This document shows, piece by piece, positions 17,249 through 59,800 of a DNA stretch of 64,000 nt. How positions within the stretch are numbered: position 1 is the stretch's first letter; the number at the start of each line of letters is the position of its first letter. The stretch is from assembly GCA_904063045.1 (NCBI GenBank), contig CAJFCJ010000023.1:682001-746000 (forward strand), written 5' to 3'. Below the pieces are notes generated by a model, which saw only the letters and a program-made list of their open reading frames with translations, did no database searches and had not been told where the DNA came from. This stretch comes from Dimorphilus gyrociliatus (taxonomy: Eukaryota > Animalia > Annelida). The translations under genes were made by a program, and so were the position numbers.

Positions 17249-19542
17249 TTAATCCGAGAAAAATCCATCCTTTGTTGAACATTCGGAGAAAGTGACCGTT
17301 AAATTCGAACAAGTCACATCTGTGATGACAACATCTGGATTTTGAGTTTTCCATCTCTTTTTTGGATGCTCGACAATTTTAGGGGTGACGTTTTCCCTCT
17401 CTTCGAAATTTAGGCTTCTTGCAGCTTTAGCGGCATTAACTGTTATTCGGGGTGGAGTAAGATCGGTGGATTCTTCATCAGTTTGCAGTTCAGTAAGCGT
17501 TCTCGATAGAACATTGTTATTCATTTCGGCTTCCTCTTCCTATGGAATTGAAGAGATATATAGTAAATAATAAAAGGGTAAAGTGTATGTATGTATGTAC
17601 TTGAAAACCCGATTCTTAACAATTACGACATTTAAAGGATTGCTAATCTAGGCCACACGTCTACTGAATTATTTCGCAAAAAAGATACTTTAATTGAAAT
17701 TGTAGATTTTAGTAAATAAATATAAGTAGACATTCATACGGCTTATTAGCTTCGCATTTAGGCTAAATTATCGCTCTTCTTTTAATACCCGTTCGTTAAA
17801 TAAAAACGAGATCTTTGTGCTTTGGGGACTAATTCTAGCTGGTAATTGGCTTTTACGGTCGGTTGCCTTTTAAAGCAAAGCTATATAGACGAATTTTCCG
17901 TTAGGAAATTATCGACAGATGAATAGTAAAAGATATATAGTATACTATTCATGTATATATGTATTAGACACGTCGCACAAGGTTAATTAATGGGCCGATA
18001 CTAATTTCTGTAACTTTTTTTGTTTCTTTTTATCAATTCTGTCTACTTGATAACGAATATACAGTAGTTTTAATTTAACTATTGTCACTTGTTAAAAGCT
18101 TTAATGGCATTATTCATGAATATTGATAAAATATTAATGAGTTGTTAGTAATCGTCAAAACGTTCTTAGTCATAAATGCTTTCCTCTCTCTCTCTCTCCC
18201 TCCTTATTACTAATATAGGTACCGATGATGACGACAGCAGTTTGGAATGAATAAGCAAAAACCAGGCAAGTGACGAAAGACTAAAGCAAAGAAATAATAC
18301 ATTTCTCAATCTAATTACGAAGCTGACATTTTTCACAAGATTGCGCAATCTCTCTATAAAAATCTCTAATTAACCTTTGGGATGCGGAACGTTCTTTTTA
18401 AGAATTAAAGCGCGACAAATAAACTGTCCTGAAAATAGACCTATTCTGTAATTTTCTTTTTTAAGGGCGACAGGTGCTTTAGGCAGATGTGAAAATTGCG
18501 CCAAAAAAAATTTTTACGAACAAAGCGGTACAATGTAGACAATATCATTTTTTCCCCTTTTCATATAGGAGGTATATTAACAACTGTCTTTCCTTGCCCT
18601 CCACCTCTTTTATCCCTCTGGCAATTTCTATTGATTTCTTTTAAACTTGAGAGAGAGAGAAGAGAAAAGGAAGAAAGATTACTTTCAATAATATCACTTT
18701 CTCTTCCCCAATTTCGAAAGTAAAGTAAAGAAAAGGCAAGCAAGTGCACACAGACACTCGGATCGGACCCTTTTTGTTTCCTACTATCTCAAGTGAGAAA
18801 TCTGTTTAGCCTACAGAAAAACCAGAGCGTCAGATATTAGTTTTTTTTGGGTTTTTGTACTGTTATGGGTAAATTATGGGTTTATCCGATCTGAATCATC
18901 CATCATATCATTTATTCCAGTTATTAATAACTTACTTCCTCATCGTCTTCGTCCTTCCTCCTCTTTGCCGCCTTTCTCTTCCTTAAATTTTCCTTTTTCT
19001 TGTCAATACTAGATGGGAAAGTGAAAAAAAATTTTTTCTAGTTGTAGCCATAGTAACTATTGATTTTTTCCTTATATTTTTGTGTATTTTATAAATCTGA
19101 CAAACCTTCCTAAAAATGCATCAATAAGGCCTTTATCCAAAATATTCTCCTCCGGTTCCCACGTATTATACCTTTAAAATTTTGAAAGGATTATTGATCT
19201 CCAATCGAACGACAGAGCGAGAGAGAGAGAGAGAGAAGGGGATTGAATAAAATTCGAAATACTATTCAATGTTTGTCTCTCTCTTGGGCTACTTACATCG
19301 GTTTCCAACCTTTCCATTTAACAAAATACTCCCTTTGGCCCTAAAATACGAAAAATATTAAGAATATTTAGCGAAATGCATCGTAGGCAACCAGCTGAGA
19401 ATTTCGGCAGTTAGATTTTCTGGCATGTAGCCAAGATAATCCAAGATGTACATTTTTCTATTATTTTACAAAATCTTACAATAACCTTTCTAGTGCGGCG
19501 CTTTACGATTCGTTCGGCAGTATAGATTTCGTCATCCGCCAT
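17249..19542 (-). CDS. CBX: Polycomb group chromobox protein (Pc/CBX7-like), 176 aa
   Basis: complement(join(17249..17539,18936..19008,19106..19171,19297..19340,19486..19542)). Chromodomain [41 protein letters not shown] and C-terminal Pc box VVITDVTCSNLTVTFSE. Confidence 0.92.
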
Positions 19543-29510: not shown

Positions 29511-30410
29511 CTATGTACTCTTTATGCAATGGCAAGACTTTGATTGTTTGCGACGACATAAAACTTCTCTTGCCGTGGTATTCATAGCAAAATAGACGAC
29601 AGGATTAGTAATCAAGTTTAAGCTAAATAATATCATAACAGTTGATTTGACACCAGCCGATATCGGATTGTCGTCCTTATCCAACCACATGACAATCATC
29701 GAAGGCATATAGCTAGCATTGAATAATACGAATAGAATAATGAATTGAACAGCCAATTTTGTGTGTTTCGGGTCGAGATGACTACTATTTTGTACAGCCA
29801 CTTTTACCCTGGCCCTTTTCACAGTAACGTAGATTTGACAATAAACGAAGCAGGTAACAATGTTGGGAACGGCGAAAACAGCAACAGTAACAAATATTCC
29901 GTATGGTATATTATCCTCGAAAACGAAACAGCATACGCAACTGAAGCGTAATCTAACTGGGACAAGATGGAGAAGTTGAGGTAGTGAAACAAGTAAAGAC
30001 AAATTCCATACAATTGCAATGCATATTAGGGTAGTTTTCATGGTAATTTTAGTTGAATTTCTTAAAATTGCTACATAACGGTTACAGGCAATAAAAACCA
30101 TACAAAATGATACTGCAACGGGAGGAGAGAAAGTCAAAAAAGCGAAGAATCTGCATAATAATCCATTAACGAAGAAAATTTTGAATTCTTCCATCAAAAA
30201 CAAAAATGCATTAATTGATAAATAGATATCGGCCACGAATAAATTAACAACGTACATGTTATGCGGAGTTCTCAACTTTTTGTTCACAAATATTATTAGA
30301 ATTGATAACAAATTTGTAAAAAAGCCTAATATTGAGATGATCCCATACGTAAGAGTAACATTCTGATTAATTTGCATATTCCTCACAGTGAAATTGGTTA
30401 TATTACTCAT
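29511..30410 (-). CDS. Intronless class A GPCR, melatonin-receptor-like orphan, 299 aa
   Basis: Seven hydrophobic segments from MSNITNFT (N-glycosylation sequons). Motifs: GFFTN in TM1, KKLRTPHNMYVVNLFVAD, CNRY at the DRY position, SYMP in TM6, NPVVY in TM7. Confidence 0.85.
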   Translation of the reverse strand: MSNITNFTVRNMQINQNVTLTYGIISILGFFTNLLSILIIFVNKKLRTPHNMYVVNLFVADIYLSINAFLFLMEEFKIFFVNGLLCRFFAFLTFSPPVAVSFCMVFIACNRYVAILRNSTKITMKTTLICIAIVWNLSLLVSLPQLLHLVPVRLRFSCVCCFVFEDNIPYGIFVTVAVFAVPNIVTCFVYCQIYVTVKRARVKVAVQNSSHLDPKHTKLAVQFIILFVLFNASYMPSMIVMWLDKDDNPISAGVKSTVMILFSLNLITNPVVYFAMNTTAREVLCRRKQSKSCHCIKST

Positions 30411-31878
30411 TGTGTCGTCTCTGTCTCTTTTTCGTTCTTTTTCTCCTCTCTCTCTCTCTCTCTCTCTCTCTTTCCTTTCCTCTAATCTCTCTCTTTCTCT
30501 CCTTATTTTTTGCTCTGTTTCTTTATTTTTCTTTACTCTTTCTTCCTTACTCACGTTGTCCGTCTCTCTCTCTCTCTCGCTATCTCACCTTTCACTCTCA
30601 GCCTCTCTCTTTCTCGTTCTCTCTTTCGCTCTCTATCTAGCTTTCACTCACTCTCTCCCGCTCTAATAGTAGCTTTTACTACTTACATATATACTTATAT
30701 ATATAAGATATATATATATAAGAAAATGTATGTCTGTCTTATCTTTGATAAGACGAAGGGGGTTATGTAAATAGTGGAATTAGAAGCTCGTTTATTGGTT
30801 AGCTGACTCTAGTTTTCTTTTTTGATTTTAATAGACGGCGTCTAATGAATAAAAAATATAAAATAATTATTTGTAAACGGTGTTTTTAGTTGTGTTGTTG
30901 AAATTGATTTTTGATGAGTTGTATTAATACTTTGCCCAACTAATCATATTATTTTCGTAAACAACACTTGACTTGCTTTTCATTTGCTGTCGATAAAAAC
31001 AAAAATATCCAAGTGCTTATTATAAAATACTAATATATATATATATAAATTTATTCTATACAGTATATACGTTTTGGATGGAAAGTAATCAAACTCTTTC
31101 CTTTCAAGATCTATTAAAAGGTTTATGTGAAAGTTAAAATACGGTAGAAATCATGCAATCTATAGGTTCTTATTATGTAATCTCTTAGTAGTCCGTATTT
31201 CATCCGCAAAGAGACTGAAAAGGGAGGCAAAGGGAAAGAATGGGGGTTATTCAGAATAAAACTACCGGATTAAATATCTATTTGGCTAAAGTTGACTCTC
31301 CACAGCTTTGTAAGTGGATTGATAAGGAAAGCAGGACATACTTGAGATATAAAAATACACTTATTTCTTCCTATTTTTTGCTTTCCTTTTCTTTTCATTT
31401 TCCCTTTAGAGATTATTTTAAATTATAAAAAATCCACAATCTACAATCTACAGTGTACATTGTATTTGTAATACACTGTATGTTCAGTTTACTGTATGGT
31501 TCACCCTTTTAACTCTTTCATCAAAAGTAAAAGACTTTAGACTTGGAGCTATTTCTTAAAAACTGTTTAATATATCCTTTTTGTCCTTTTCAAACGTGTC
31601 TGCTTGCTTGGAAGGCGAAAGTGTAAGGACATGATTTTTCTTTTACAGATGGCGTTCTTAGTCTTGTTTTTCTTTTTTGCAGCTTTTTCTCACACTTTCT
31701 CTCTCTTCAGACCTTTCTTTTTCTTTCTTGCTTTCTTTCTTTCTTTCTGGCTATATCTGTTTGTCTGTCTGTCCGTTTCTTTCTCCCTCCATCACTCTCT
31801 TCCTCTCGCTGTTTTCTCACTCCACTTACTTTATTACGCAAAAGCTACCTTGAATAGACATATTAATATTAACTGTAT

Positions 31879-31910
<32 letters not shown>

Positions 31911-32214
31911 AACGACATTAGTCAGAAACTTTGAAAAGAACGTTTGTAGTCGAATAAACCTAGAAATTAAACTAATAAAGTTAGTTGGCGTTTTGTTTTC
32001 GTTTATTGGAGATTTGCAGATTAAAGGATATTTGACTAATAAGGAGATGATAACAAAGTTTGGCGATGAAGAGTAGTTATCTAGAGTAATTAATTTAACG
32101 TTTGATAAGGAATGATTCTTTTGATTAGTTGGTAAATTAAGAGTTTGGTTTTACTTTAGAAGATGCTAACGCCCTTTTTAAAGAGTATAAATTACTTGGT
32201 GTGACCGATTCTAA

Positions 32215-33253
32215 ATGTCTCTTTTCAACATGGCAAATAACTCTTCTATACTTCTATACAAGTCCCTATTTTCTTCCGACACAATGTATCAAATAGTCTA
32301 CTTTTGTATTTTAGGATGTGCCGTGTTTCTAGCTTTGGTAGGAACAATTGGAAACATTCTATCTGTTCTCGTTCTCAGAAGGCCAAAGATGAGAAATACG
32401 ACTTCCGCGACTTATATGCAATGGTTGGCGGCAATTGATACTTTTCTTTTAAATTTGATTCTTGTTCCTTTTAACGTCATTCCCCTCCTGCATTTGTGGC
32501 ACGTTAGCAACTCATTTGCCAAAGGCTACGTTTGTCTGTACATCTATCCATTCTTTAATTGGCTATCCTCCGTCGAGCCGTGGATTATTGTAGCTATGAC
32601 GGCTGATCGCGCAATCGTCGTTTCACTTCCCACTAAAGCCAAATCGATTTGTACGAAAAAAAGAGCAAATATTCTCTGCAGTGTCCTTCTGCTTTCCCTA
32701 ATGGTTTTTCATTTTCAAAAATACGTTACAGTCGTCGGAGCAAGGATAATAGTTATGCCTTTTAACAGATGGATGTCCATTCCCTCTTGTATTTATAGGA
32801 ACGAAATTTCAAAAGTACTTAACGGAACTGTCTTGGGTGTTCTTCAGTCACTCTCAACTGGAATATTGCCCGCCTTCTTTTTAATTATTACCAATATTAT
32901 TATTGTTTACGGATTGGCTAAAGCAGATAGGCAGAGAAGAATAATGACGTCATCAGACTCGGCCACCGAACATAATTCCAAGTATGGGCAATAAAGAAAT
33001 AATGCACATAATTTTTTCTAGAACGAATCAATTTCTTTTTACGAGAGAGATTCTTTTTCTTTTACCATAAAGCTTATACGAAAATATGGAGACTGTATCT
33101 CCAAAGCAGAGTACAGTATACTCTATATAAAGTATTCATGAACATGTATAGTTTACCTTTACACGCCTGTAAAATTGCTTATAACCTATTCCTAGTCATG
33201 TAAAGGTAAGTTAAACAGACATTTACTTCACTTTATAATTATTTAATGATTTC

Positions 33254-33302
<49 letters not shown>

Positions 33303-33655
33303 TATATCTTTGCATTCATTTTGCTCATACTTGAAGACAAATAGCCATAATGTTGATCTCTGTTTCAATTCTTTTTTGGTTCACTTACCTCCCAGTTGCC
33401 GTATGGTTTTTATACTTTAAGGCACTAGGTTATATGGATGCGTCGGCTCATCCAGAAGATTTGGAATTTGCCAAAATGGGTCATACAATTTTAACGCTCA
33501 TCAGTTTTGCAAATACGGCCGGAAATTTCTTCTTATATTGCTTAACTGGTCAAAGATTCCGGCAAGAGCTTGGCGAAATGTTGGGTATAAAGCGTAATTC
33601 AAAGGTAAAAGAGGTTGGTAACTCTTCAGTAAAAACAGTTTCTCAAAAATTATAA
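32215..33655 (+). CDS. Class A peptide GPCR (FMRFamide/sex-peptide-receptor-like group), ~361 aa
   Basis: join(32215..32981,33337..33655), phase 2. Motifs: GTIGNILS, LAAID, AMTADRA, TYLP, ANTAGNFFLYCLTGQRFRQEL. The start could be the second Met (32230). Confidence 0.88.
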
Positions 33656-35141: not shown

Positions 35142-38100
35142 TTAATGCTTTTCAATTAGGAACTTTGAACGATAATACAATAAAAGACGAGAGGTAGGCA
35201 TATGAGTAGCATAGTTAGTCAGTTGATCATGGTAGTCTAAAAGAGACAAATGCATACATTGCTCTTTGGTTTGTTTCTCTTTTTCCCCTCTCGTACGCAT
35301 AGATACAAACACACCGTCGATTGTATGCATGTACTAATATTTTATTTATACTAACACAATAACATCATTATCAGACAGTAATTTTTAATTGTCGAACTTT
35401 ATCTGATAAAAATTCAAGACACGGCAGTCAATAGAGAATTGGTCAATCTACTAACGTGTACTTATTTTAATGAGGGAGCTTTTTGAAAGAAAAAAATAAC
35501 ACACAATTATTGAACTCCTATCATCTAGTTCTTCTCTTTTTCTCTTCAATTTACGGACAATGAATCAGAATTAATTAGTCTTACTATTATAAAGGTGGCG
35601 TAGAAATGAGTGGATTTTTAACCTCTTGGCATAAAATTGTAAGTGTGTACCGCAATGAGTACAGGGGCATTGGATTTCCTGACGTTCTCTTCCTACCTAA
35701 TCTCTTTGTTAGGCTTATAAATATCAGTTAAAAATTGAAAAAATTAGAAAGGATTAGTTGTAGAATATTCCTTTCTCTTTCCCAAATTATATTTATTTCC
35801 TATCCGAATAAATGGATTAAATTGATTAATAAATTGACTAATTAATTAACTAATTTGTTGATTACTTGGCGAGTAGACTACTGATAGGAAAAGAATACAT
35901 ACCGTCGCTAAATCGAAGACGATCTTCTGCCAGATGGTCCATTTTTGCAGCAGTTGGAGCTGATTTGATTAGCCTGGAAACAGTCTGTTTTACGTTTCTC
36001 TCCGGTCTTATAATGATTATATACATCTTTGGTGCAAATAAACATACGAGGGTTACTGTAGCCGACAAAGATACAGAAAATGCTGTCGTTATCAATCGAA
36101 CGCTTATGTTAGCAGAAGTCGATGCATAGATTGGAACAAAAGCTAACCATATGATACAAATTGTATACATTGTAAAACCGATGTGCTTGCTTTCGTTAAA
36201 TGCCTCAGGTATGTTTCTAGTAAGAATTGCATAGATTGTGCAGATAACAACTAAGAACATGGGGTAAATTAAGCCTATAATAAAGCTAAAACCTACAGCC
36301 GATTCGCAAACTAATTGGTTAGAGGCTCTTGTGGGATAATAGTGCCTAATGTTAGGTGGGGAGAAAACCAACCAGATTGTACTTATAATAATTTGAACAA
36401 ATATTAAAACTGTACAAATAAGGATTTGAGAGACCGGTGAAATAAACTTTGGTCTCCTCGAAGTCCTTCTTCCAGCGCTGAATATCCTATATATTCTGTT
36501 GGTTTTAGTCAATAGAGCCGAGTAGGAGAGACTAAAGCTGAAACCAACCGCAAATTTTTGAACTGCGCAAATAATCTTTGTTGGTTTTAAAAGAAGAATG
36601 AAGCTAATGAAATAGCACAACAAGAGGCCCAGCAGTAGCATAGATGATAGTTCTCTTCCGGAAGCTATTAGTTAAAAGGTCATTAATCGTTATTTGTCTT
36701 TTAAATATTTTTCCATGAGAGGAGAATCTGCTGTACAGCCGACTTCACCTTTGTAAAGCCGTCTGACATTCCCTCCCTAACACAAAAGACGCACACGCCC
36801 GCACTCTTATTCTCGTTTTCTTCTTTAAGAAGAAAGGGAACTTAAGAAGAATTTTTTATCATATTCCTTTTATAAACCTCTTGTATAAGAGAAGGGTGAA
36901 CTTTTAAAAGAACGTAATAAAATTTAAGGATAATTAGCTTTTCTGCTGAAAATTAAAGGCTAGATAATAGATTTATAGGAAAATAGCTCTCTCTCTCTCT
37001 TTGTCTTACTGCTTTATAAATATAATATCCTGATTAATGACCTTTTACAACAGCCGTATCCCATCTCCTGCAAAAAACAGCCATCACAAATAACGTTGTA
37101 ATTATTCCAATAGACGCCAAACAGGCGGCAGATAGAGCTCCGGGTGAAAAGAATTTTAGGTATTCAAGAGGAAGCTCCTGACAAACTTTCAAATCTCCAG
37201 ATGGTATTGTCCCTTCAGGGCACAGTAGACATTCGTATTCCGTTGGACGAATATGCCATTTAGGGCACTTTGTACAAGTCCAGCAACAGATGACAGATCC
37301 CACTTCTTGTTTGATTTCGTTAAATTCGCATGGTGGAGAGCAACGACTCGGGGGATAATCAGTCTGATTAAGGCGGAATTGAAGATTTGAGCGATTGATC
37401 TGTAGCAAAGGAATAGATGTGCGTATGAGTAAGAAAAAGCTAATCAAAGTGTTATCATTAAGTGTAAAAATTAGGAGACGCGAAAAGTTTACTAATCGCG
37501 AACTCGGCGAATAATTTGGCATTCTACTCGAATATTTGGCCTATTATTGGACGAAACGAGAGAAGGAAGGATAGAGAAGGAGGGAGAGAAAGAGAAAAGG
37601 AAAGAGAGAGAGTATCTCTGAAGAAATTACTGTCCGATAATATATGGTCTTTAATAACATTATAAAAATTACAAGTAAATCTGTCGATAACTAGGTTGTC
37701 AAGAGATAAAATTTATGTGGTATAATATAAGAACTATATACAGTCTATACTGTATATACCGTTTAATGAGTAGATATCCTGTATAGCATTTAATCTTAGA
37801 TTCTACTCTTTTTGGATTATAGGTTAAATTGCTAATTATCATTTATCTCTGCCTTTAACTCAACAGAAATCAACTTTCTGAGCTTTCTGACCTCATTATA
37901 CAAACCTTTAAGCCATTTCCCTCGTGAACTCCAACTGTATGCCAACCGAAACTACCTGGAGAAGTTTGCTTATAGTGAAGGATTCTGTATCTGGGAGGTC
38001 CGTCTCCGTTGGGTAGAAAGTTGAAACTCAGCCCAGAGAGACCGGTAAAATTCACTTTTAGTAGATAAGACTTAAGCAATTCACCGTCGTACGGATCCAT

Positions 38101-41100
38101 TTCCTTACAAAGCCCCTTTTCCTTACAGTAATCCGCTTGCATATTCTGTACAAGAATAATTATATACATTTGATGGAGAACGTTAGTAAAATAACGATGC
38201 TACTTAACCCTTAAAGCGACCGCAAAAGCCATTACCGAATCGCTAACGAATTGCAGTTGAGCTTCGGCCACATAACCGTTTTCCTTGCTGGGCACTTCAT
38301 CTCCAGTGCAAATTTTACTATAATTTCTATTGAAGGGTGTACTGTAACTGCGTAGGGAATAACTCTTTTTTTAATTTGTCTATTACAGTACACAACAACT
38401 ACGATTGATTTGCTATAGCTACTGGCACTGTTTTCATGATTATACTTAATCTTATAAATAGGATATACAGAATAGTTGGATGATGATTTTCCTTATTTCT
38501 TCTATGCTCATTAACTCGTGCATTCGCTCATTCGCTTCATTCGTTCATTCATTTGCACTTTTACAGGTTTTTTGGCAACATCAACTAATCGGTCAAGGCT
38601 ACGAAACGACTCGATTCGGCTTTCTAAAATTATCAAAAGTATCAGATAAGGCTATCTTTAGAGTAGCGTTTGCTTGTTTCCATTTTGCGGTTTATTTTTG
38701 AATTGTGCATGTATAATACTGACGAAATATTCAAAGAACGATAACTATTCTCCTTCCAGACGATTATCAGCATTTGACCATCTAAATTGGCCAAATATAT
38801 TTTGGTATACATTGCTATGGAGAGGAGAGAGGAAAATAATCAAATTCGTTGTTTACAGTGCACGGCATCCTATATTATTCATTTAACTATTTAGTAATAA
38901 GGCGTAACTGTATCGTCAACCTGGGAAATAATATGTAACAATGATCGGTTAACAGAAACAGGAGAGGGTTAAACACATATTATCATTAATAATTAAAAAG
39001 ATAAGGATTAAAGTTGAATTTGATTTTTTTTGCAGCAAAGTTTTACTGCCGGCCCATTCACCCCACTGTTGCATCCCCTTTCGTTTCTATGTAATTACCC
39101 GATAAAACAGAGAAGTGAAAAATTTAATTTTTTAATGCAGGTTTATTGTTAAAAAGTTGGAAAATTTAATAGTTTTCCTTCTTCCGGTTAATTATCTAAA
39201 AGAGAAATGTATTTTAACGATAAAATCCATTATTTTTTCAATTTACTCTCTCATTGAAAATGGAGAAGAAGAGGATAAAATGGAGGAAAGATTCTATTAT
39301 ATTTGATAAAGTTTGTTGAAGAATTTTATTGAAAAACGAAGAAAAGAAAGAGACGAGAAACAGGTGAAGAAGAGAATTGACTGATTGAAATAATCAATCT
39401 TTTACGGTTGGCTAAATCTTCAATTTTTGTAAATATTCACCTAACCAGAAAGGAAATATGTTATTGACTTGATATAGAAGAGTAACGAAAAGGAGAGGAA
39501 ACAACAAGGCAATACTAGAGTTTGTCAGTTATATTACCTTTGCTACATCTTACAATTATAATTCATTATTTCATGTTTCTTGCTCTTTGTTCGCCTAACA
39601 AAGTAATAATAAAAAATACTAAAAAAAGACTAAAATCCTATATACATTAACTGTAAATATTATTAATGATTATGTGTGAGTTTCTTCTTCTTCTTGGTAT
39701 AGTTTCTCTTTTTTTCCGCTTTCTTTCCTCCTTCCCCTCTCCTCCCTCCTCACTCCCTCTTTTCACGCCCAAAAGAAATAATTCGTTTGCCTTTATTAAT
39801 TTGATGTTATGGAGGAAAGATCACGTAAAGTTCGTGATAGAACAATGGACAATAGAAATGCAATTTTCCATAATTTTCTGATTTTACGCACGTGCTTTTA
39901 CTGGCAAATTAATCTTTCAATATGCAGACGGATAGAAAGTAGCCATACAAAATTAATCAATAGACATTTTAGCTAATTTTTTATATTGCCTCTGACTATA
40001 CTATACACTTTTATATTTCTATTATGCCCCTCTTCTAATCAGCAAGTTTACACGAATTGAAAGACACGGATAGTTTGCCGAAAGGTTTATCAGAAAATTG
40101 CTTTTGTCTTCTCTTCTTTTTTAATTTTACGCCAATCGTCTCGAGGATTTAAAAACAGAGAGGCTAGTAAAGAGATATTTTCTATCCTCTTCTAACTCTT
40201 CAAGGTTTGTAACAAACTCGTAAAGATGCTCTTTCTCCTCTCCCACAAACGATACTACACCTATTGCATAATAAATATACCGGAAATTGATATCGTCCTT
40301 TCTGTGTCGTTTATGTACAGCGTACGTTATACATTTATTCGTTGTATTCTTTAGTTCACCAACCATCCCCATCCATCAAAATAGAACGTCACATATTCGG
40401 AAATGTTGCGATAGCTACTTTGTATTTTAAGTAAAGTATTCATGCATCTTTAATGAAGATATTTTATAAAGAAAACTCATCCTGTTGTGCTTTAGTACTT
40501 TTTATTACTGCTAATTGCTTAGATTGATGTTAGATGTCTCTGCCTACTTAATAATATGTTTTTCGTCGTGAAACCAAAGGGTCTATCAATCTTCATAATT
40601 GGAACACCTGAATGGCTTGATGAATATACAAAGTCACGGTTTTCGTCTCTCTCTCTCCCTCTTGCACACACACACACTTTTAATCGTAAGAAATACATAA
40701 TTTCCCGCCACTTTTATACCCCCTCATATCGAGAGGTCTAAAGGAGAAAGATCAGTACCAAATTTAACCGAGTTTGTGACAAAACCTGCATAAACTTTCA
40801 TTCTGCCCAAAATCCTTCGTGCCTAAACAAACCTTGTTATAGATGCTTTCTTCTTTAAGCTGGATTGTCGGCCTTTTTCTGTTCTTGTCGTACTTTGTAC
40901 AGTATATATAATGCATATATTCTAGTGTATATTATTCGCTACATACAGTATGCTCTTTTTAATCTATCCGCTATTTTGATCGCCTAGAGGTAGTTTAAAA
41001 AATAATTAAGGTATGTTATTATTATCCATATTGAATAACCGTTGCGTTCCAATAATTATTGTTTAATAAACAAATCATGGAAAGAAATGCTTGATTAAGG

Positions 41101-41809
41101 TGCACACTAGTGAGAAGCACAAACATGTTTAAAGATCTCATTAGATAACATAATATCTACATACAATAAGAAGCAATTCATCTTTTGGTATTGTTAAACG
41201 ATTCTGGTTAAAAGATAATCTATACAATCTATATAAAGGGAACAGAAAGAGTGTCCTTAATTCAGAAACGTCATTTTTAGCGTTAGATGCTGAATAGATA
41301 AATCTCTTTTCGGTTAAACTGCCTATCACTTTAAACGAAAAGAGTAAGTAGTATTATTGTTAAGTTTTCAAACAGACAATGAGAGAGTAACACTAACTAT
41401 CCTTCGCTTTCTCTTTAGTATTAATTAAACGACAAATAATAGATAATATGAAATAATTCTTTGTGTTATAATTTATTATTAGCCACTAAATCACGATTTT
41501 GAAATACGATCTAATTTTCTATTTATTATTCTATGTACATAGTTACTGTTTAAGGTCTACATTTGCATGTCAATAAATATATATGTATTGTATATAATGT
41601 ACACAGTATATAAAGTGTATGTAGATAACGTGTACATAGTATACGATAGGTATGTACTCTATGTTATGTAACAAACAGTATGATGTTATAATTTACTCTC
41701 TTTAAACATTGTAGAAGTCTTATTTACGTTAATTCTCGTCAAAAATTTTCATTCTCAAGGTTTCCGACTAAATATATACTATATATTTATATATATATAA
41801 TCTCTTGCT

Positions 41810-41884
<75 letters not shown>

Positions 41885-44800
41885 ACACCCCTCAATCCCC
41901 CTCCCCCATACTCTCAATATAAACACATGTCCTTACTCCTATATTAAACTGCTTTAGCTTGATGTGCAGACTCTGAAGTAATTTTCATTCACACATCTAT
42001 CAACACAGTGTGGTGACTCTTTCGAAGATATTTTTGGATGAGTGATTAAGGATTTTCTACCTGCACACTTTGTTAATGCAATTGTCGAGATTTACTTTTT
42101 TCTAGCTTTAATGAATTAAACTGTACTCTCTTACGTACTTGAAAGAATAAGGGTTTTTGAAATAAAATTGATGACAATTAGTTTTTTCTAGGGAAAAAGT
42201 ATCTCTATAGAAGCATTCGATGAATGGGAAAAAAAGGGGAAAAAGAATAAAAAAACTGGTAATTGAATAGGGAAGAATCTAGGAAAATTGTCTTTATCAG
42301 TTTAATTCGTTAATAAATAAAGATTAGATTATCGAAAAAAAAACAGCGTATAGTTACGAATAAGATAAATAATGGATGGTAGTGTTAGACTGTCATTTCA
42401 TTCCGTAACCCTAAAGAGATGATACAGGATAAAAGGAGGAAAAAGAGAGAAGATGATAAAGGGGGAATGTGATACGTATGTGTATGTGTGTTTGTGTGTT
42501 GGACAGAAAACAATATCGTAAATGAAAAGAAAGCATAGTTTTAACATAGCACAATTCAATTAGGGATGCGTGCGTTTTATATATAAAAAAAAACCCCAAG
42601 TCGCCTTATGTATTCACTTTCACGTGACATTTTTAATTTTTCTTCATTTATCATTAAGATACGCTACTTATTCTTACGAAGATAATCTTTCATCTATCCA
42701 TTCCCTTCCTACATGTTAATATTGAAAAATGTATAAAACGTATAAAATTATAACGTTCTTTGTTTTTTTTTCCTTGACTTTCATCCTTTCATACTTTCAT
42801 TCTTTCAATCTTTCTCACTCTCCTTTAATTCCATACTTTCTTTTATTTCCCCCCTTTTTGTCCTTTTATATAATCATATGAAAAGAATAGTAAATTTTTT
42901 ACTTACGATTGATTGAACTTGCATTTGAAATAATATTCCCAGTATTCTCTGAACCATGGATTATCCAAATTTGAATGGGGTCTTAATTTAAGGAAATATT
43001 CGTCAAAGCCTTTTAGAGGTTCGGCATACGGTTGGACGGTGATAGCACCTTCCACTTGCGCTTCGTTACCATCCGAAACTAGAATTCTTCCGCCCCAGCC
43101 GTCGCTGCCAATCCAAGCGAAATAACCTGTCATATTGTTCCGTTTGACAGCTTTCATCAGTTCACCAACTTCCTGGTCGGAACCGAATACTATTACACCT
43201 GTTAAAAAAACGACTTGTATCGAAAATTTTATCACGTCTTTTACAAGTTAAAAATAAGCCAGAGGAAAAGGCCACTAGAAATTTGTATTGTAACATTTGC
43301 TTTTCTTTCGCTCGTTTCCTTTCTTGTTTTACGAAGGGAAAGAAAAGACAAACCTCTTGCGCTTGAATCTGCTCTCAGCCTCTGTACTATCTTATCGTAG
43401 GCCTCATCGGTTGCCACACCTGAATCCTTAATTAATTTGTCAGTCACAGCCAAGCAAAGACCTTCCATTCTTATCCTGTCATAAATCTCGGCGTAGGCCT
43501 TTTCACCGTAGCTCGATTCCTCGTAGACAATGGATACATATGTCCAATTCAGCATTTTCACCAATTCAACAATCACCTCTGCTTGATTTTTATCCGATGG
43601 TATTGTTCTCATAAAAAAGGGGAAGCGTTTCTCAGAGCTCAGTTCCGAGCTGGTTGAAAAGAAGCTGACCTAAAAAGGCGAAAGGTGATTCTATGGATAG
43701 ACGTCGAGAGACGTTTTCTTTGTTCATCTCACGATACGGTCAGTGAAAAGAGGAGGTGACGAATAGACGCATTTTTTCATTAATCACCTCATTGCCTCTA
43801 AGGATTGGAGGCATTCGAGCGTTTTATATATGTGAAACCTTTAACTCTTCCTTGACAGAGAAGAGAAAGAATAATAACCCTAGCGTGCCTTATTAATCTT
43901 GTAAAAATTCTTGATTCTTATCCATTTTCCTGAGACTAATCGACAAGGTTAAGGTTATCGAGAAGAAATTAATACAACTATCTCTTTTTCCCTTCATTTT
44001 CGCCTGTATCAATTTTTTTGCGAAGAAGGAGAATGAGAGAAAGAAGAGGATGGAGGAAAGGAGCTTTTGTCTTCTTTGCCTTTGCCTTCTCTTCTAGACT
44101 AAATGTCGTCATTAATTTACGACAATCGATAATATATGTCAAAATACAAATATATATTACTAGTACAGTATATAAGACATATTTAAACCTTAAATATTTA
44201 ATAAAGCTTTTCTTAAAAAATAACAAGCTATATCCTTCTCTGCATAAATATATTAATTCGAAGAGAATGGAAAAGAGAGAGAGCCGGATTACGAAGAGTG
44301 AGAGACAAGAAGAATGAGGCAATACTGTGGAACAGGGGCGGACGGTGGAGGAAACGGAGAATGACGTGTGAGAACGGACAGACTCCTGCCGCCTGTAGTG
44401 GTGCTTATGTTTTTCTATTTACGGCGTTAGTAATGTAAAGGATACTCTGTCTATATTTGATTTTAGACGTAGTTTCATTCGTTATCTCCTCGCATCAAAG
44501 ACCCCATAATGAAACAAATAAAATACTTAAAACGAACAGTAATGCGTATTGAATATCTTACTTGAGGGATTTTAAACAACTTTAACAAATTTGCAACTTG
44601 AATTGACGTAACACTGGACGGGGCGGCAATTACTCCTGCCATTACTTCTGCTCTCTTGCCACTTGAACAATCGGTGGCGCCGGTTAACTTTGACACTGAA
44701 CCTGTTTTTTTTTTTAATTAATTTTTCAACGTAAAACGACGAAAAATATTCGACGAGTGTTTGCTTGTATTCTCTTCAATTTCGCCATTGACAAACATTT

Positions 44801-50600: not shown

Positions 50601-52147
50601 TTTCATTGGATGGACGAATGAGACAATGAATGACGGACGGTGAATGAACAAGGCGATTGAGTAAATAAGGTAAAGTAGAAAAATAATTTGGTAAGTTTAT
50701 TAAAAAATAACCCGGAAAAATCTGGGAAAACCTTAACCTTAAAAGAAGAGAAAAAGAAAGCGGTTCTCTTTTTCGACTAAGTAAAGATAGAAGAGAAAAA
50801 TGATTAGAAACTTTTGTATTCTATAGTGAATTTCCTCAGGGTAAATAAAACACAACAAAACAAAAGCAACTGTGCTGCTTTGCTTTCTTTTACCCCTTCT
50901 CCTTTTCTTTCTTTCGGAATAGATCACCATAAAAAACACACTAAAAAGTATAATCTCGCTATTCAACTCTTAATCAATTACGTATACCAGCGTAATTGAA
51001 AATAATGAATATTAATGAACAAGGCGTACAATTCCTGTTTTAATATTTTCCAGCCCAGAGAGAGAGAAAACATGATCAATTAGTTTTTCAACTAATGTCC
51101 TCATTCCTTCTTTCTCTATTATTTTTGTTAATTTAGAATATTCACTAGGATTAAATTTTTTATTCTAGATTTTTCTTGAATAATTAATTCAATTATTAAT
51201 AAGTCTTCTTTCTTAACGAAAGAACAAACTACGCATGAAAGTTTAGCATAGCATAATTTATTCCCTTTCTCTCTTTCCCGTATTCTTCTACCACATATGT
51301 TACGGTTTGGAAAATTATGATTACTTAAAAGTGAACATGTTTTCTTTCTTCCTTTCACTCTCTCTCTCTTTCTCTCTGTCGCTTTGTCGTCTTTCTCATA
51401 ACAGTAATCTAATTAAAGGTGCGAGTTAATATCTAAAGTCTAGGATGTGATAAATTTTAAGTAGCTCTTGCATAGTATAATAAGATTGCAGAGAGAGTCG
51501 AGTTTACAGTAGAGTATGAAGGAAAGAGGCAAAAACAGTAGATGATTATAAAAGAGAATTGCGAGAAAGTTGTATGAATTAGAAGAAAGAAAAGATTGAA
51601 AGAAGGGAAGAGAAACAATATAAGAAAAGAAATATGAATGTTTTATTAATTCGCAAGCAAGTTGCTGATTAAATTTTACTCTTTTGTCTACTGTTGCTTA
51701 TCCAACAGTGTAGTATTACCTATTATTTTTACATTTTTGCCAATATTGTTATTGTAAACAAAAATCAGGGTTACTTTTCCTTTCTTTTCTCTCCCAATTC
51801 TCTACTCCTCACCTTTTCAGGTTGTCTTCCTTCTTTCACATTATTAACCAATAAAAGATATTTCTTTTTATTTCATTATTTGTTCGTTTCTTCATATTCC
51901 GTCCATCCATCCATCCATCCACTTCGCTCACCTAACCCTCCCTCCTTCATCTGCTCATTTATTCTTTTCTCTCTTTCTTTTCTCCTTACAGATACAACAA
52001 CAAAAAAGCAACGAAAATCTCACCTTATATTTCATTTATTTCTACAAGTTTAAGACCGCCTATCCATTAGTTTCTACCCTCAACGCTTAACTTTCTGCCG
52101 ACTGTCTCTCGTCAGGCGTCGCTATATGATTTTATTTAACTCAGAAT

Positions 52148-53302
52148 TCAACCGATAGATGGCGTATTCAAACACATATTTATGAAAAACGCATGAAAAC
52201 GATAATCATCAGTTAGTTCAGGATGAAAGGATGTTGCCAGAAGTTGATTTTGACAAACGGAAACGGGATGCCTGAAAGAAAACCATGGTATTGGTGGATT
52301 GTTTTACAAATGTAATGGCTAATTATAAGCATCGCGTGCAATATTACTTTGTTTTGTCTAATTTACATATTGGAGTTATCGACGTATCAGCTACAGTCAA
52401 CTCAAAGGAATATTTATTCTTTTATATTATTATGTTGTCTACGAACCTGTCTAATGTTGCCAAAACGCGAACATCCTCCGAATCGATGCTCTTTATCGAA
52501 GGGGCTCTAATAAAGATTCCCGGAAATTCCCCTCCCAGCTCCTCGTCCAATGTCAACTTGGCTTCGAAACTATCCTTTTGCCGTCCATAGGAATTTCGAA
52601 CTGTTGTCACGTGCAAACCGCCAATCTTTTGAAAATAGAGATAGAATTAGAAAGAAAAAAGTCAAAACTATGACCAGAAAATTTGATTTCTTTTGACAAA
52701 TACTGACTAGTGATTGACTGTTATTTTTCCAATCCAGAACATTATTTGACAGTAGTATTAATCCAGCGCACGTTCCCCACATTGCTTTCTTTTTAGACAT
52801 CCAATCCCGTAAACTTTCCATAAAATCTTCCGCCTGCAATAATAAACAAACCCTCTGGGTATCAATTAATACAATTATCATTCTACCTGAATCATACTTT
52901 CCGCTATCCCTATTTACATAATCTTGCCAAATGAAAAACTTGAAAGAGAGTTTTTTCTCTTTCCTACTATTCCTAAAAGCTTTCTTTTCCGTTTCTCTAT
53001 CTGTCTGTCTGTCTGTCTCTCTCTTTTCTAACTCAATTATTCTTATCACAAATTACATTTTAAAAACGCTTATCAGCTTCTATGTTTATTCCTCTCTATC
53101 GCTGATGGTGTTTCAATTAGTGAGTAGAAAGAATAATTTTTCGGTTTATAAATCACCCTAACATGATCTCTACAGCCATGACTTCTTTCTATTCCTTCTT
53201 CTACCCTCTCTATCGTCATCAGTACCCCTATGGCTAACCCTAACCTTATCTTTAACCCTATCTTTTATACATATTACGTTTTTAGTGTGGTTTATAATTA
53301 AC

Positions 53303-53333
<31 letters not shown>

Positions 53334-53545
53334 TTGTATTTTACCTTGAGGAAGATGGACATTGTCGTACTCTCTCCTCCAGGTATGACCAAGCCATCCA
53401 AACCATTTAAATGTGAAGGTTTTCTGACTTCTTCTACTTTCAGTTCAATGTCTTTATCTACGAGTTGGGTAGCTTTTTCAAAAGAATATCTGTGCTCTTT
53501 GAAAGCTCCTTGAAAGCATAAAATTCCAATTCGAACGTCTTTCAT
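52148..53545 (-). CDS. PDX2: PLP synthase glutaminase subunit (PDX2/SNO/PdxT), 209 aa
   Basis: complement(join(52148..52271,52447..52625,52708..52833,53345..53545)). Motifs: [34 protein letters not shown] (nucleophile Cys), [30 protein letters not shown] (His-Glu of the triad). Confidence 0.95.
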
Positions 53546-54062
53546 GTTGATTGTGCAAGTTGGACGTGTATAACCTGTACGAAATGTAGGGGAGAGGAAA
53601 AATCGGGTTAGTATTTAAAGATTTGGTTACAATTCGTATAATATTTCGTTTTTATGTCTTTCTTCAATCGTCATCCTCCATCTCCTCCTCTAGTTTGGTT
53701 TTCAAAGAAAGAAAACCAATAATCATTGTGACTTTCAAGGTTATTGAAAAATAATTACTATACCTCTCTATTGTTAACTATCTAAACAAATAAAGATAAG
53801 AAAAAAGAAAAAGGGTAAAAATTACTGTTTAAAGGGAAAAAATGCTCTCCTCTCTCTATTACAGTCTTCTTGTACTGCCTGTCTCAAGTATTGTTGGCAA
53901 TGAACCACATTTTGACTTGGCCTCTTATTGTATTTTTCTTATCTGCGAAAGTACATGGCGGTTGTTTATATCTTTTCTATCGTTGAACTATTGACCTTGG
54001 TATTTACTATAAAAGGTACGAGATTTCGTCTATCTTTCAGTAAAATCCTTTACGTATACAAC
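53546..54062. promoter_or_regulatory. Putative shared bidirectional promoter of PDX2 and PDX1
   Basis: 517 bp between the divergent start codons (the PDX1 ATG is provisional). YY1-like ACATGGCGG at ~53953-53961. Confidence 0.45.
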
Positions 54063-56665
54063 ATGCCAATTTTACCAGGTGTTAAAGACGGTTCGTATCA
54101 GAAAATTCAATAGCAGATTTCTCTTCTTCTTCTTCTTCGTCGTCGTCGTCGTCGTCTTCTCCATTTTCCTCTTCATCTAATAATCTTTATTATTTTGAAG
54201 TAAAATTTCTATACTTTTGAAAATTGAAATATATTTCTATAGGTAAACCACTAAATGAAGGACAAGACACTGTTCCCAGTATTGGTTTTGGTACCTTTAC
54301 CGTCAAGTCTGGTCTTGCCCAAATGGCAAAGGGAGGAGTCGTTATGGATGTGACCAACGCCGAACAAGCGAGAATAGCCGAACAGGCTGGGGTAAGCATA
54401 AAAAGAAATGGAGATATAGAGATATAAATAGATAGATAGATAGATAGAAAACTCCCTTTGCTTCCCCTTGTGCAATAGTTTTGCAAATGTTTAAGTCATA
54501 CATTTTAAAATAGGCTTGCGCCGTCATGGCTCTCGAGAGAGTGCCGGCAGACATCCGAAAAGATGGTGGAGTAGCAAGAATGTCCGATCCGAAGGTGAAA
54601 TTTTCCTACTTTCTAGTATAAAACATTCTAACAATTAACAAGTCTGTACAAAACCCTATAATAGAAAATTAAAGAAATTTGCGAGACAGTATCAATTCCC
54701 GTAATGGCGAAAGCCAGAATTGGACACTTTGCGGAAGCTCAAATATTAGAAGCCTTGGGAGTTGACATGGTTGACGAATCAGAAGGTATATTGTTTTTCT
54801 GCTAGAGAACATCTTGCATTAACAAAGTGTAAGACTATAATTTTCAGACGGTTATTAAAATGCGAAATATACCATCTACTAAATTTTAAATAATAGACAT
54901 TTTTCACTATATAGTCTCTCTTATTTAGCCAAACAATCTATCTTTCCGTTCATTTTGTCTCTCTCTACCTACTTTATATTTGTTGCTTTTCTACAGTGTT
55001 AACTCAGGCCGATTACGAAAATCATATCGATAAAAGGCAATTTAAAATACCTTTCGTTTGCGGAGCAAGAAATTTAGGCGAAGCTCTGAGGAGAATTGCC
55101 GAAGGAGCAGCAATGATAAGAACGAAGGGTGAAGCGGGAACTGGTAAGTAATATATCTTTTACTATTACATTATTAATTAACTAGGCAGTTGTCACTATT
55201 GTTGTCTACACGAATCGGATAGGAGAGAGATAGGGTATTCTTCAACGCCATATAGTAGGCCGAAAAACGTATACAATGCACCATAAGTATGAACTAAGAA
55301 ACTCGACCAAGTAGATTGCGTGTCAATAAACAGCATAGGTTACATGAATAGCATGTACAAGGCGAGAAATACGTCCAGCTTAGCCTTAATTAATCAGCTG
55401 ATAGCTATTAGTGAAGATTTAAAAAAGTGTAATCAAGTTCAAGAGAGAAGATAGCTGGAATAGTAGACTTGAAAAAGATAAGACACGTACTATAAACTGT
55501 ACGGGAGAGATGAATTAAACAATAGAGGAGGAATAGTTGAAATATCAATGATTTATGAAACATTATCTTATTTCACTTTATCTACTGAAAATGTACTTAT
55601 TTTAATGAATTAATCAATCTAACTTTTCTTTACTAATAGATTTAATCATTTCCTATATATTACGTTATACTTTTAAGAATATTCTTTTACATAATTACGT
55701 TCTAGGCAATCTATCATTCAGTCATTTTTTTTCCTTCTCCTCTCCTTCTCCTTTTCCTCCTCCTCCCCCTACTCCCTCATCTTATCTTACCCACCTACTT
55801 ATCTACTTTTTCGTTATCTGAATTTGTAATGGATACGCCTACTTCAAATACAATTCAATTTTTCTTTTGCCACTCGTCTCAACTAATCATTGTTATCTAC
55901 CTTTAATCGAGCCTATCAATAAATTATCTACAAGAAATCATTGACTTTCATTTTCTGTCCGTTAATCTTTATATAATGGCATGCCATTAAATATATAGCT
56001 GTACAAGTAGATCTAATCAATCTTATAGCATGCTATAGCCTAGTAATTCTGCATTTACTTTTCTCTAAATGCAGACCGGAAGCAATTAAATGTCTTTGTC
56101 ACTTATTTTGTATTTTAATTAAGTAGCTAATTAATTATTCCATTTATTTTGACTAGTCGAACTTTTGTTTCTTTTTAAGGAAATGTTGTTGAGGCTGTTA
56201 AGCACGCTAGAACAATTAAAAGACAAATTAACTTTGGAAAATCTATGGACGAAGAAGAGTTATATTCTTACGCTAAAGAACTACAGGTTCCCTATGATCT
56301 GCTAGTTAAAACTGTTGAAATGGGTAGACTACCTATAGTTAATTTTGCGGCTGGCGGCTTAGCAACTCCCGCAGACGTTTCACTACTAATGCAGTTGGGC
56401 GTCGATGGAGTTTTCGTTGGATCAGGTATCTTTAAAAGTTCAAATCCCGAAAAAAGAGCTGTCGCCATGGTACAGGCAGTCACGCACTATAAGGATGCCA
56501 AAAAGATGGCTGAAATAAGCGAAGATTTAGGAGAACCAATGGTAATGAGATTTTTAAACATTACTGCAGCCATAGTCTATCCAATTATCTGTATGATTTT
56601 ATAAACGAGATACTTTTTCGTATACTATACATACTACATATATCAATATACATATGCAGTATAAA

Positions 56666-56703
<38 letters not shown>

Positions 56704-56803
56704 CTTACGCGCTAAGTAATTACCTCTTTCATCTCTAAAGGTGGGATTAAATTGCGACGACATTGGTGAGAAATGGTCGCTAAAGGAATCCTCAAGAGAT
56801 TAG
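54063..56803 (+). CDS. PDX1: PLP synthase subunit (PDX1/SNZ/PdxS), ~312 aa
   Basis: join(54063..54078 [provisional],54243..54391,54514..54594,54665..54785,54997..55143,56180..56541,56741..56803). Motifs: [83 protein letters not shown]. Confidence 0.95.
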
Positions 56804-59800
56804 ATTGTAAAGGCAAAGGAAAGAAACGCAAAAAAAAAGAGAGGAAATATCGTAAATCATAAAAAGGAAAAAAAGAATAAATAAATCGCAATGAAAAGAA
56901 AGACGCAAGTCGGCTTATTTCTACTTTTAATCGTAATGGAAAATGTGTAAAAAAAAGATTATTTGAATAAATTTCTAGTGCATTTATCCCTCATCTAAAT
57001 TCTTTTACAAATTAATATATCAATATCTCCTACAATAGAACCCATGTCTTTTAATTTTTCATCATATAATCAGATAATACTGTGTATACAGAATAGTTTA
57101 TTCCGTTCAAACACCATTCAACTCGCCAATAGGTGCCAAATACAGTATATCTATAAAAACTTTATTACGCTCTTTTACTTGCCTATAGCAAAAGCAATCG
57201 CGAAGTAAACTGTAGATGCGCTAAACGTTTTATGTATAGCTTTATTACTGCTAAATAAGAGAAACAAAACTACTACGTAATAGTTGCAAATCCTTGCGTT
57301 TATGTATTATTGCTTTATTTTTCACTTGAACGACAATGTTCACATTTCAGAGAATGAACCGAGCACTAGTCCTTTCGAATATCAGAGGGATCTCCTAACC
57401 ATATTCTTAATTTTAAACAAGATTAGAGTGTCTCTCTCTCTCGCCAAACCTATCAGAGGAAATTACTGTATAATATCAGGCCTCTTTTTTCAGAGTGCTT
57501 GTAAAAGAAAATAATTTCCTCCCGCCTATTCAACTTACAAATGTAAAACATTCATTTGTAATATTTCTTCTCGTTGCATATTTGTGGTTGTCGTCCTTAG
57601 CCTGTTCCAGATAAGCCTAATTAATTGAGATGTTTTAATGTTGCATATCTTTGCCTGCATCTTCTTGCTGAAGAAAAGTCTAGAAATTTATTGCACCATA
57701 GTTGTTTCTCTTTCCTCCTCACTTCGCATCCTAAAACCGTTAAAGGACAAAGGTTTTCCAAGAATTAGGAGATGGTAGCATTACTCTACCAATTCTTTAG
57801 TCTTACAGTTTATCTATTCGAATATCAGATTAGCCGCTATTAGGACTGTTACTACTATACTATTTTAATTAGTGCCTTACAAGAGGTCAGACTGCATTCA
57901 TTTCGTGACGTCTATTATACTAATTTAGATATCATTTATCTTTATCGTGATTGCCATCAAACTTATCTTAAACAGGCCTTTTGATCGGACAATGACAGTT
58001 ATCTTGACAATAAATCTTTCAATTATTTTAATAATAATACATTTATTGTTCATGCAATTTTACAATTAACTCACTTAGAATTTCATGATTTTTTCATTCT
58101 AGTTATACTTATTATTGTTCAAACAGAGAGACATGCCTATCATATCTCTTTGATATAAAGTTTTTTGAAGTACATACTGCAGTTTTTGTTGATTTCGCTC
58201 TTTCTCTCTCTCTCTCTCTCTAGAAAAAAACTTTTAAGATGCTAGAGATCCGTTACTCTTTTTTTGCCAAAATGAATTACAAATAGCACTGTTCGTCACT
58301 CTAATATTTAAAGAATCATCAGGGTCATTTATAGGCAGAGGTGTCTGTTGGAGAGGAAATTTTCTCCCTTTCCTCTCCTTTCATAATTTAATCTGTATCG
58401 CTTCACTTATTCCTGCGTCAGCGTAAAGACAAATTGCTGGGGTTGAAGCGTTAACGGCTGCGATAGAATAGTAGCCCAATGATTTCAATAGTGTTAACAT
58501 TAATGACATAAAATGAATAAAGGAATTGTCGTAAAGAGTGCGTCTTTAGAAAAGCAAAGAGATAGAGAAAGAAAAGTAAATAATAATAAGAGTGCTATAT
58601 TGAATAATATGTGTCATGTGCCTGCTTTAAAAAACTATATCTTTCAAAGATAACACTTGATATTGAAACAATTTTGTGTAACAATGAAAGTGAAACAAAT
58701 GACATTGTTTCAAGTATAAATACTACACTTTTTCCATCAACAACTTTTTCGCTTACTCACTCTTCTTATTCGTTTTTTGCTCGGACTATTGTCTTACGCT
58801 CTTCTTATAGACGAAAGAGGTTAGAAATTGGCGACATTTCTTCACTCATTCACTTGCGCAGCAACCCGTCTACGCATCTATTTATCCATCCATCCATCCA
58901 TCCATCTGTCTATCTATGTATAACAAACACGCTTTTGTTTATTTCTCAATGGACATGCTTGTAATAAATAGGACAATAACAACTTAAGCAAAACACTGAC
59001 GCAGGAGAAACAAGGACACGAACCAACTATTAAATCTGATAAAAGATACTCGACTGAAAACTTGTTATTTCATTTAAAAATAAACGCAAAACACCCGCAA
59101 AACTCTCTTTCTTTGCCATCGTTCAGTTAATATATTCCTTTGCACACAATCACAAAAAATTTCGTCATCTCTCTTTCTTGTATTACGGTTAGATAAAAAA
59201 AAACTGAAAGTGAATAACGTAAACAAGTAAAGATATGAAATAAACTTGTACTTTGTTCGTATCATACGCGGACAAATCCATTATTAATATCTGGTAAGAG
59301 CCAGAGGGGGGTAGAATGGATAATCTACCTAAAGACAGATAGACAGATTGGCCGATAGATTAACGAAGGGACAGACGCGGAGAATAGAAGAAAACGAGCA
59401 AAACATAGTCGTAAAAAAACAAAAGGGAAATAATTCTAGTTGAACAGATTGAGATTATTAGAGGAGAATTTGACCAGACTTCTAGGAAAAGATAATTACA
59501 TTTAATTGAGATAATTATTTATCTGCATGGTATTTGTATTTCAAGTTCAACTTTGACAGATATTACAAATCTCGCTTGCAATTTGTAATATCTTATGTAA
59601 CAACAGTAAGTGAGTTAGGGTGTAAGTCTGTGTGTGTATTATTCAACATTTCTATCAGTCGCAGTAGTAGCCTAGCAGTCATTTTAAATATTTTATTTGT
59701 CATTCTTTCAACCTTTACCGACTTTCTGCTAAAGAAGTCAACATCAGGGGAGTAGGATTTTACTTGGTTCCCTGTTAACGCAAATTTTCTTTCCCTTGCT

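Follow-up and report, generated by a model that had tools for sequence, protein, structure and literature searches.

A pair of PLP synthase genes in the Dimorphilus window

Does an annelid carry, as genes of its own, both subunits of the pyridoxal 5'-phosphate (PLP) synthase of de novo vitamin B6 synthesis, and how old is the arrangement in which the two genes are found? The question is raised by a stretch of 64,000 nucleotides from the genome of Dimorphilus gyrociliatus (hereafter the window, always taken at its full length), in which the two subunit genes, PDX1 and PDX2, occupy positions 52148-56803. The window matched scaffold CAJFCJ010000023.1 (897,033 bp, assembly GCA_904063045.1) without mismatch over 19,938 bases, with window position 1 at scaffold position 682001. 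We conclude with strong confidence that the locus consists of native, vertically inherited PLP synthase genes of D. gyrociliatus. It is real but already catalogued, both genes being present in the public annotation.

PDX1 was modelled as seven coding exons on the forward strand (54063-56803), with six introns, a TAG stop and a product of 316 amino acids, and PDX2 as four exons on the reverse strand (53545-52148), with three introns, a TGA stop and a product of 209 amino acids (Table 1). The genes lie on opposite strands with facing 5' ends and a short spacer between them, and all nine introns of the two models have GT..AG borders. A first-pass annotation, made from the sequence alone, had described intact, spliced reading frames for both subunits; its coordinates, strands and intron counts were correct, with the stop codons exactly at 52148 and 56803, and the intactness of the frames was borne out by colinear Pfam matches together with the intron borders. 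The five largest PDX1 exons (exons 2-6) matched the SOR_SNZ profile PF01680 colinearly over positions 2-207 of 207, corresponding to a full-length (beta/alpha)8 domain, and the four PDX2 exons all matched the SNO profile PF01174, over positions 1-187 of 188, corresponding to a full-length SNO amidotransferase.

Arabidopsis PDX1.1 (5LNT) aligned to PDX1 without a gap over residues 27-311 (E = 2.7e-131, 441 bits). Thermus PdxS (2ZBT) also aligned without a gap, and the SNZ1 structures 3FEM and 3O05 were among the solved homologues matched by PDX1. In the alignment, Lys102 of PDX1 (in MAKAR) corresponds to position 98 of 5LNT, Lys170 (in RTKGE) to position 166 and Asp45 (in VMDV) to position 41. 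The lysine forming the Schiff base with ribose 5-phosphate we take to be Lys81 in Bacillus subtilis and Lys98 in Arabidopsis, the second, relay lysine to be Lys149 and Lys166, and the active-site aspartate to be Asp24 and Asp41, respectively, so that PDX1 has all three residues in place. For PDX2, the comparison with B. subtilis PdxT (2NV0) paired Cys89 with Cys79, His185 with His170 and Glu187 with Glu172, giving a complete Cys-His-Glu triad. The first-pass claim that the catalytic residues of both subunits were kept was thus upheld by the alignments.

Transcription, splicing and the deposited models

Four of the eight matching sequencing runs were placed on positions 52000-57000 and supplied the RNA and DNA evidence for the locus. 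The contigs of one run, X2, which carries a second organism code, were identical to the window and spliced at seven of the nine introns (PDX1 introns 1, 3, 4, 5 and 6; PDX2 introns 2 and 3), indicating that X2 is an RNA data set and confirming these seven directly; PDX1 and PDX2 were both transcribed in this one run. Word depth in X2 was approximately 1500-2000 on the PDX1 exons, 100-340 on the PDX2 exons and 6-13 on the introns, contig depth being a poor measure of expression. A second RNA run, X6, also identical to the window, confirmed two PDX1 joints and read into exon 7. At PDX1 intron 2 and PDX2 intron 1, the number of unplaced letters at the ends and starts of X2 contigs was that expected for overlapping contigs across the intron. 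At PDX2 intron 1, contig 4 stops at 52833 plus two ambiguous letters, and contig 6 has 28 unplaced letters before 53345, which would fit a direct junction of PDX2 exon 2 with exon 1. This joint was not seen directly because simple repeats were skipped in read placement. Such repeats, of the types (TCTG/TCTC)n, (TA)n and (TCT/TCG)n, were located at 52988-53033, 53291-53344, 54114-54168 and 56650-56700 and were assigned to PDX2 intron 1, the spacer and PDX1 intron 6. For PDX1 exon 1, an alternative end at an in-frame GT (54078) was discarded, since the RNA joint puts the donor at 54090.

A relative of both genes, 90-95% identical and spliced at the same junctions, was present in a marine metatranscriptome (X7), presumably from another dinophilid or a divergent population. 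Its differences were synonymous in 10 of 12 cases in PDX1 and in 3 of 5 in PDX2, a pattern to be expected under purifying selection.

Our PDX1 model was 100% identical to the deposited DgyrCDS13096, whose UniRef name is pyridoxal 5'-phosphate synthase (glutamine hydrolysing). The deposited PDX2, an SNO-domain gene exactly on the PDX2 span, has a product of 244 amino acids, as against 209 in our model. An alternative in-frame AG acceptor at 52938, 105 nt upstream of PDX2 exon 2 (52833), adds exactly 35 amino acids. The added stretch (52834-52938) falls inside the SNO domain, which the precomputed Pfam matches on the deposited product show split in two; RNA depth over it was about 6, compared with about 120 on the exons (~5%), and the ends of the X2 contigs agree with the 209-amino-acid form. 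Judging from the lengths and the contig ends, the deposited 244-amino-acid product probably uses the wrong acceptor and includes intron sequence. This probable correction of the PDX2 acceptor is the sole, small new point of the locus.

Phylogeny and intron positions

In protein searches, the closest named PDX1 sequences came from the annelids Owenia fusiformis (77% identity), Capitella teleta (76%) and Paralvinella palmiformis (75%), followed by those of tunicates, copepods, sponges (Suberites domuncula SNZERR, 76%), jellyfish and molluscs. Most of these were labelled 'SNZERR-like', the name that PDX1 bears in annotations of annelids, molluscs, tunicates, copepods, sponges and cnidarians. A profile search seeded on a fungal scaffold brought up Dothideomycetes almost exclusively, along with the protein of the window itself. 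A maximum likelihood tree of 27 named PDX1 proteins recovered an animal clade (support 100/99) as sister to fungi (89/85), with Dimorphilus and Owenia grouped together (93/93). PdxS of the Chloroflexi Caldilinea and Litorilinea was 73-76% identical to annelid PDX1, no more distant than many animal sequences, and the tree separated the two groups.

BLAST identities of PDX2 to animal and to bacterial proteins were alike (41-47%) and failed to split the two, so that a tree was needed. Its animal rows were named proteins found with an alignment of C-terminal halves, together with partial sequences from neighbouring loci. The animal proteins again formed a clade (100/99), apart from bacterial PdxT, in which Dimorphilus grouped with Capitella (95/84) and Owenia joined them (91/90).

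Intron positions in PDX1 were compared using exact spliced models of eight animals on one alignment. Of the Dimorphilus introns, those at residues 60, 87, 127, 176 and 297 recurred, with position and phase unchanged, in a sponge, a jellyfish, a mollusc, two tunicates and two annelids, and the intron at residue 10 was common to Capitella and Lottia. Two introns had no counterpart in Dimorphilus, one at residue 237, which all seven other animals have, and one at residue 26, which six of the seven have (Capitella lacks it); both gaps fit intron loss in a compact genome. PDX1 exon 6 (362 nt) equals the 183-nt and 179-nt exons of other animals fused, indicating that one ancestral intron was lost. 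Exon sizes were shared as well: the 81 nt of exon 3 recurred in six of the seven other animals, this exon being fused with its neighbour in Amphimedon, and the 63 nt of the last exon were common to Ciona, Clavelina and Amphimedon. In PDX2, the intron just before the IGG motif coincided with the start of the similarity segments in Owenia, Ciona and Clavelina. With the annelid genes inside the animal clades and their introns common to other animals, the animal nature attributed to the pair at first pass was sustained, and the monophyly and shared introns argue for vertical inheritance of PDX1 and PDX2 from an animal ancestor.

Conservation of the head-to-head arrangement

The PDX1-encoding contigs of other animals, leaving out the copepod Tigriopus, were looked up for the position of PDX2. 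An SNO gene was found directly upstream of PDX1, on the opposite strand, in six of these animals, with spacers of 427-2041 bp: the annelids Capitella (427 bp) and Owenia (780 bp), the tunicates Ciona intestinalis (737 bp) and Clavelina (1067 bp), the sponge Dysidea avara (674 bp) and the mollusc Lottia (2041 bp). Dimorphilus included, the head-to-head pair is present in seven animals of four phyla. Annotation and translated searches revealed no PDX2 less than 10 kb from PDX1 in the sponge Amphimedon or the jellyfish Rhopilema.

Dysidea avara (OY787647.1, 1-24728) has two PDX1 copies of 314 amino acids each, in opposite orientation and about 5 kb apart; PDX2 is head-to-head with the first of them, and a gene for a PLP-dependent decarboxylase (Pyridoxal_deC) lies just upstream. 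Head-to-head SNO/SOR_SNZ genes were also present on two ENA metagenome contigs, L001 (positions 5060-8543; 1.09 Mb) and L002 (positions 5393-8465; 363 kb), both gene-dense and eukaryotic, with a GC content of about 0.51 and with Ank, Nucleotid_trans and Ribosomal_S2 among the neighbouring genes. The PDX1 similarity segments of L001 have their boundaries at residues 60, 87, 127 and 176, where introns lie in animals, and its PDX2 fell inside the animal clade. Both contigs probably derive from small uncultured animals.

A gene-order survey of 64 eukaryotes published in 2010 counted SNZ1/SNO1 as one of the best-conserved pairs with divergent transcription, and its supplementary table lists Ciona intestinalis, Dictyostelium discoideum, several filamentous fungi and yeasts as species with the SNO/SOR_SNZ pair (PMC2871058). 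The likeness to the divergent yeast SNZ/SNO genes noted at first pass is sound, given the opposite strands and the 517-bp spacer. The novelty then proposed for the pair did not stand, as the genes were already annotated, six other animals have them head-to-head and the pair is tabulated in that survey; the accompanying caveat of possibly limited novelty was right, and neither linkage nor lineage is new in kind. The linkage data would fit an ancestral as well as a convergent origin of the divergent pair. That it is one of the oldest two-gene microsyntenies of Amorphea, preserved by a shared bidirectional promoter in Dictyostelium, fungi, sponges, annelids, molluscs and tunicates alike, with its presence or absence marking the B6-prototrophic animal lineages, is a proposal that we regard as evenly poised. 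If true, it would contradict the textbook view that animals cannot make vitamin B6.

Genome context and origin of the pair

The genes around the pair are listed with it in Table 1; M13 peptidase and claudin-like genes are located on the same contiguous sequence. The class C G-protein-coupled receptor (GPCR) and the Polycomb motif that had been named as animal neighbours at first pass are real, and to them the class A GPCRs and the M13 peptidase can be added; the GPCRs of both classes make up one receptor cluster.

Table 1. Positions, in window coordinates, of the PDX2 and PDX1 exons, the spacer between the genes and neighbouring features (joints are given as the two exon borders joined in RNA contigs of the runs named).
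Feature	Position	Strand	Details
PDX2 exon 4	52148-52271	-	TGA stop; His185 and Glu187 in SFHPELT; PF01174 positions 155-187
PDX2 exon 3	52447-52625	-	PF01174 positions 96-149; X2 joints 52625>52708 and 52271>52447
PDX2 exon 2	52708-52833	-	Nucleophile Cys89 in WGTCAG; PF01174 positions 55-86
PDX2 exon 1	53345-53545	-	ATG at 53545-53543; GGESTT motif; PF01174 positions 1-50
Spacer	53546-54062		517 bp between facing start codons; GC 0.33; 5' untranslated regions presumed inside
PDX1 exon 1	54063-54090	+	ATG; 28 nt; phase 1 end; X2 RNA joint 54090>54243, GT..AG
PDX1 exon 2	54243-54391	+	Asp45 in GGVVMDV; PF01680 positions 2-33; aligned to 5LNT without gap
PDX1 exon 3	54514-54594	+	81 nt; PF01680 positions 34-60; X2 joint 54594>54665
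PDX1 exon 4	54665-54785	+	121 nt; Lys102; PF01680 positions 62-100; joint 54785>54997 in X2, X6 and X7
PDX1 exon 5	54997-55143	+	147 nt; Lys170 in RTKGEAGTG; PF01680 positions 102-149; joint 55143>56180 in X2 and X6
PDX1 exon 6	56180-56541	+	362 nt; PF01680 positions 151-207; X2 joint 56541>56741
PDX1 exon 7	56741-56803	+	TAG stop; X2 joint; loose X6 end enters exon 7
CBX/Polycomb C-terminal motif	17249-17521		Domain match
Two class A GPCRs	29511-33655	opposite strands	Domain matches (7tm_1; one with Srw-like match)
Class C GPCR, multi-exon	35862-43612	-	Domain matches (ANF_receptor, NCD3G, 7tm_3); receptor cluster upstream of the pair

Fungal, protist or bacterial DNA mis-assembled into an animal scaffold might be suspected from the similarity of PDX1 to fungal proteins (72-75% identity) and, to much the same extent, to Chloroflexi PdxS, similarity searches alone not being exclusionary. 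Such a contaminant is at odds with the mid-scaffold position of the locus (scaffold length 897 kb), on one contiguous sequence with the GPCR, CBX and M13 genes; GC content is uniform across the window (0.30-0.36), and the DNA contigs from the source sample reach a depth of 265-319 at the locus as well as in its flanks. It would also have to share its intron positions with other animals and have annelids as the nearest relatives of both proteins, with the Owenia and Capitella loci built alike, and we give it practically no credence. A lineage-specific horizontal transfer into annelids or Dimorphilus, with introns gained later, would have a parallel in the cyst nematodes, whose SNZ/SNO genes are regarded as bacterial-type horizontal acquisitions, and the patchy distribution of the genes among animals could suggest gain over loss. 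Multiple losses are, however, a simpler account of that distribution than repeated gains, and a transfer is very improbable in view of the single animal clade in each tree, that of PDX1 being sister to fungi, the intron positions and phases common to sponge, annelid and tunicate, and the linkage kept from sponge to bilaterians. Contamination and recent horizontal transfer were rejected because of this combination of context, relatives, trees and introns, in favour of native genes inherited vertically.

Presumed function and significance

By analogy with solved homologues, PDX2 would act as a class I glutaminase that releases ammonia from glutamine by means of its Cys-His-Glu triad, and the ammonia would then be passed from PDX2 to PDX1. 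Transcription of the two genes diverges from the 517-bp spacer, which is most likely a shared bidirectional promoter, in an arrangement that may be older than animals. One X2 contig covers 53345-54090 without a break, linking the first exons of the two genes through the spacer; this would fit 5' ends that abut or overlap and is no proof of them. Enzymatic activity, including a glutaminase activity of PDX2 dependent on PDX1 binding, complex formation with dodecamer assembly, and vitamin B6 prototrophy of the worm are predictions from the two genes, and prototrophy of Dimorphilus may reasonably be inferred from them.

The genes could also have been kept for some other role, as a non-catalytic regulator like plant PDX1.2 or in relation to stress or singlet oxygen, in a worm that still needs dietary B6. 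Pseudoenzymes of the PDX1.2 type exist in plants and were among the structure matches at lower scores, the gene of the sponge was initially reported as one that responds to ethylene, and PLP synthase activity in bilaterians is so far a prediction. Yet the catalytic residues are intact in both subunits, PDX1 scored 427-441 bits against the catalytic PDX1.1/1.3 and 301 against the non-catalytic PDX1.2, the partner glutaminase is retained beside PDX1 and transcribed, and the differences in the X7 relative are mostly synonymous, all of which makes another role distinctly improbable.

Several points weigh against our interpretation of the locus as a native PLP synthase pair. The majority of reviews continue to describe animals as unable to make vitamin B6 (PMC7954711). 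In the PDX1 tree, a transcriptome sequence from the amoebozoan Stygamoeba was placed within the animal/sponge part; contamination of that transcriptome may be involved. The PDX2 tree was built without fungal or plant rows, three of its animal rows and the L001 row are partial, query-anchored sequences, and it is for these reasons weaker than the PDX1 tree. PDX1 intron 2 and the junction of PDX2 exons 1 and 2 are supported indirectly, by the X2 contig ends. The contig spanning the spacer could represent low-level unspliced or genomic reads, X2 carrying a low intronic signal, and no 7-mer or 8-mer was common to the PDX2-PDX1 spacers of seven species beyond shuffled expectation.

The locus itself matters little, because the genes are publicly annotated and the enzyme is well understood. 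A modest but real point of wider interest is that annelids, molluscs, tunicates, copepods, cnidarians and sponges have PDX1/PDX2 pairs that are intact and transcribed and retain ancestral introns, in contrast to the reviews that deny B6 synthesis to animals; many marine invertebrates appear to keep the genes of the de novo pathway. A literature search on Dimorphilus and vitamin B6 returned a single paper, which concerns endosymbionts and not host genes. Dimorphilus, a small animal that can be cultured and whose genome is compact, would lend itself, as a bilaterian, to work on B6 prototrophy and on the putative 517-bp bidirectional promoter, a spacer that appears to have held the two genes together since before animals.

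Comparison with known systems

The closest counterparts of the Dimorphilus pair are those of Owenia and Capitella, in which PDX1 also has 316 amino acids (312 in Paralvinella), PDX2 is head-to-head, introns are shared and the sequences are sisters in the trees. SNZERR/SNO of the sponge Suberites domuncula are likewise an animal-encoded, intron-bearing PDX1 and PDX2, from another phylum, with SNZERR in the same animal clade; for the SNZ and SNO genes of this sponge, their structure and their promoter, a review refers to Seack et al. 2001 (Biochim Biophys Acta 1520:21) and is itself silent on how the genes are arranged (PMC7954711). SNZ1/SNO1 of Saccharomyces cerevisiae resemble the Dimorphilus genes in diverging from a short spacer, but the yeast SNZ/SNO genes lack introns and occur in three copies, whereas Dimorphilus has one pair in the window, with six and three introns. 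Arabidopsis PDX1.1/PDX1.3-PDX2 and B. subtilis PdxS-PdxT have the same aspartate, the same two lysines and the same Cys-His-Glu triad; the bacterial pdxS and pdxT genes are co-directional in an operon, in contrast to the divergent Dimorphilus pair, and the plant PDX1 and PDX2 genes are not known to be linked. The SNZ/SNO genes of the cyst nematodes (Heterodera/Globodera) are, as in Dimorphilus, a case of both PLP synthase subunits in an animal genome; unlike them, Dimorphilus PDX1 and PDX2 belong to the ancestral animal clade.

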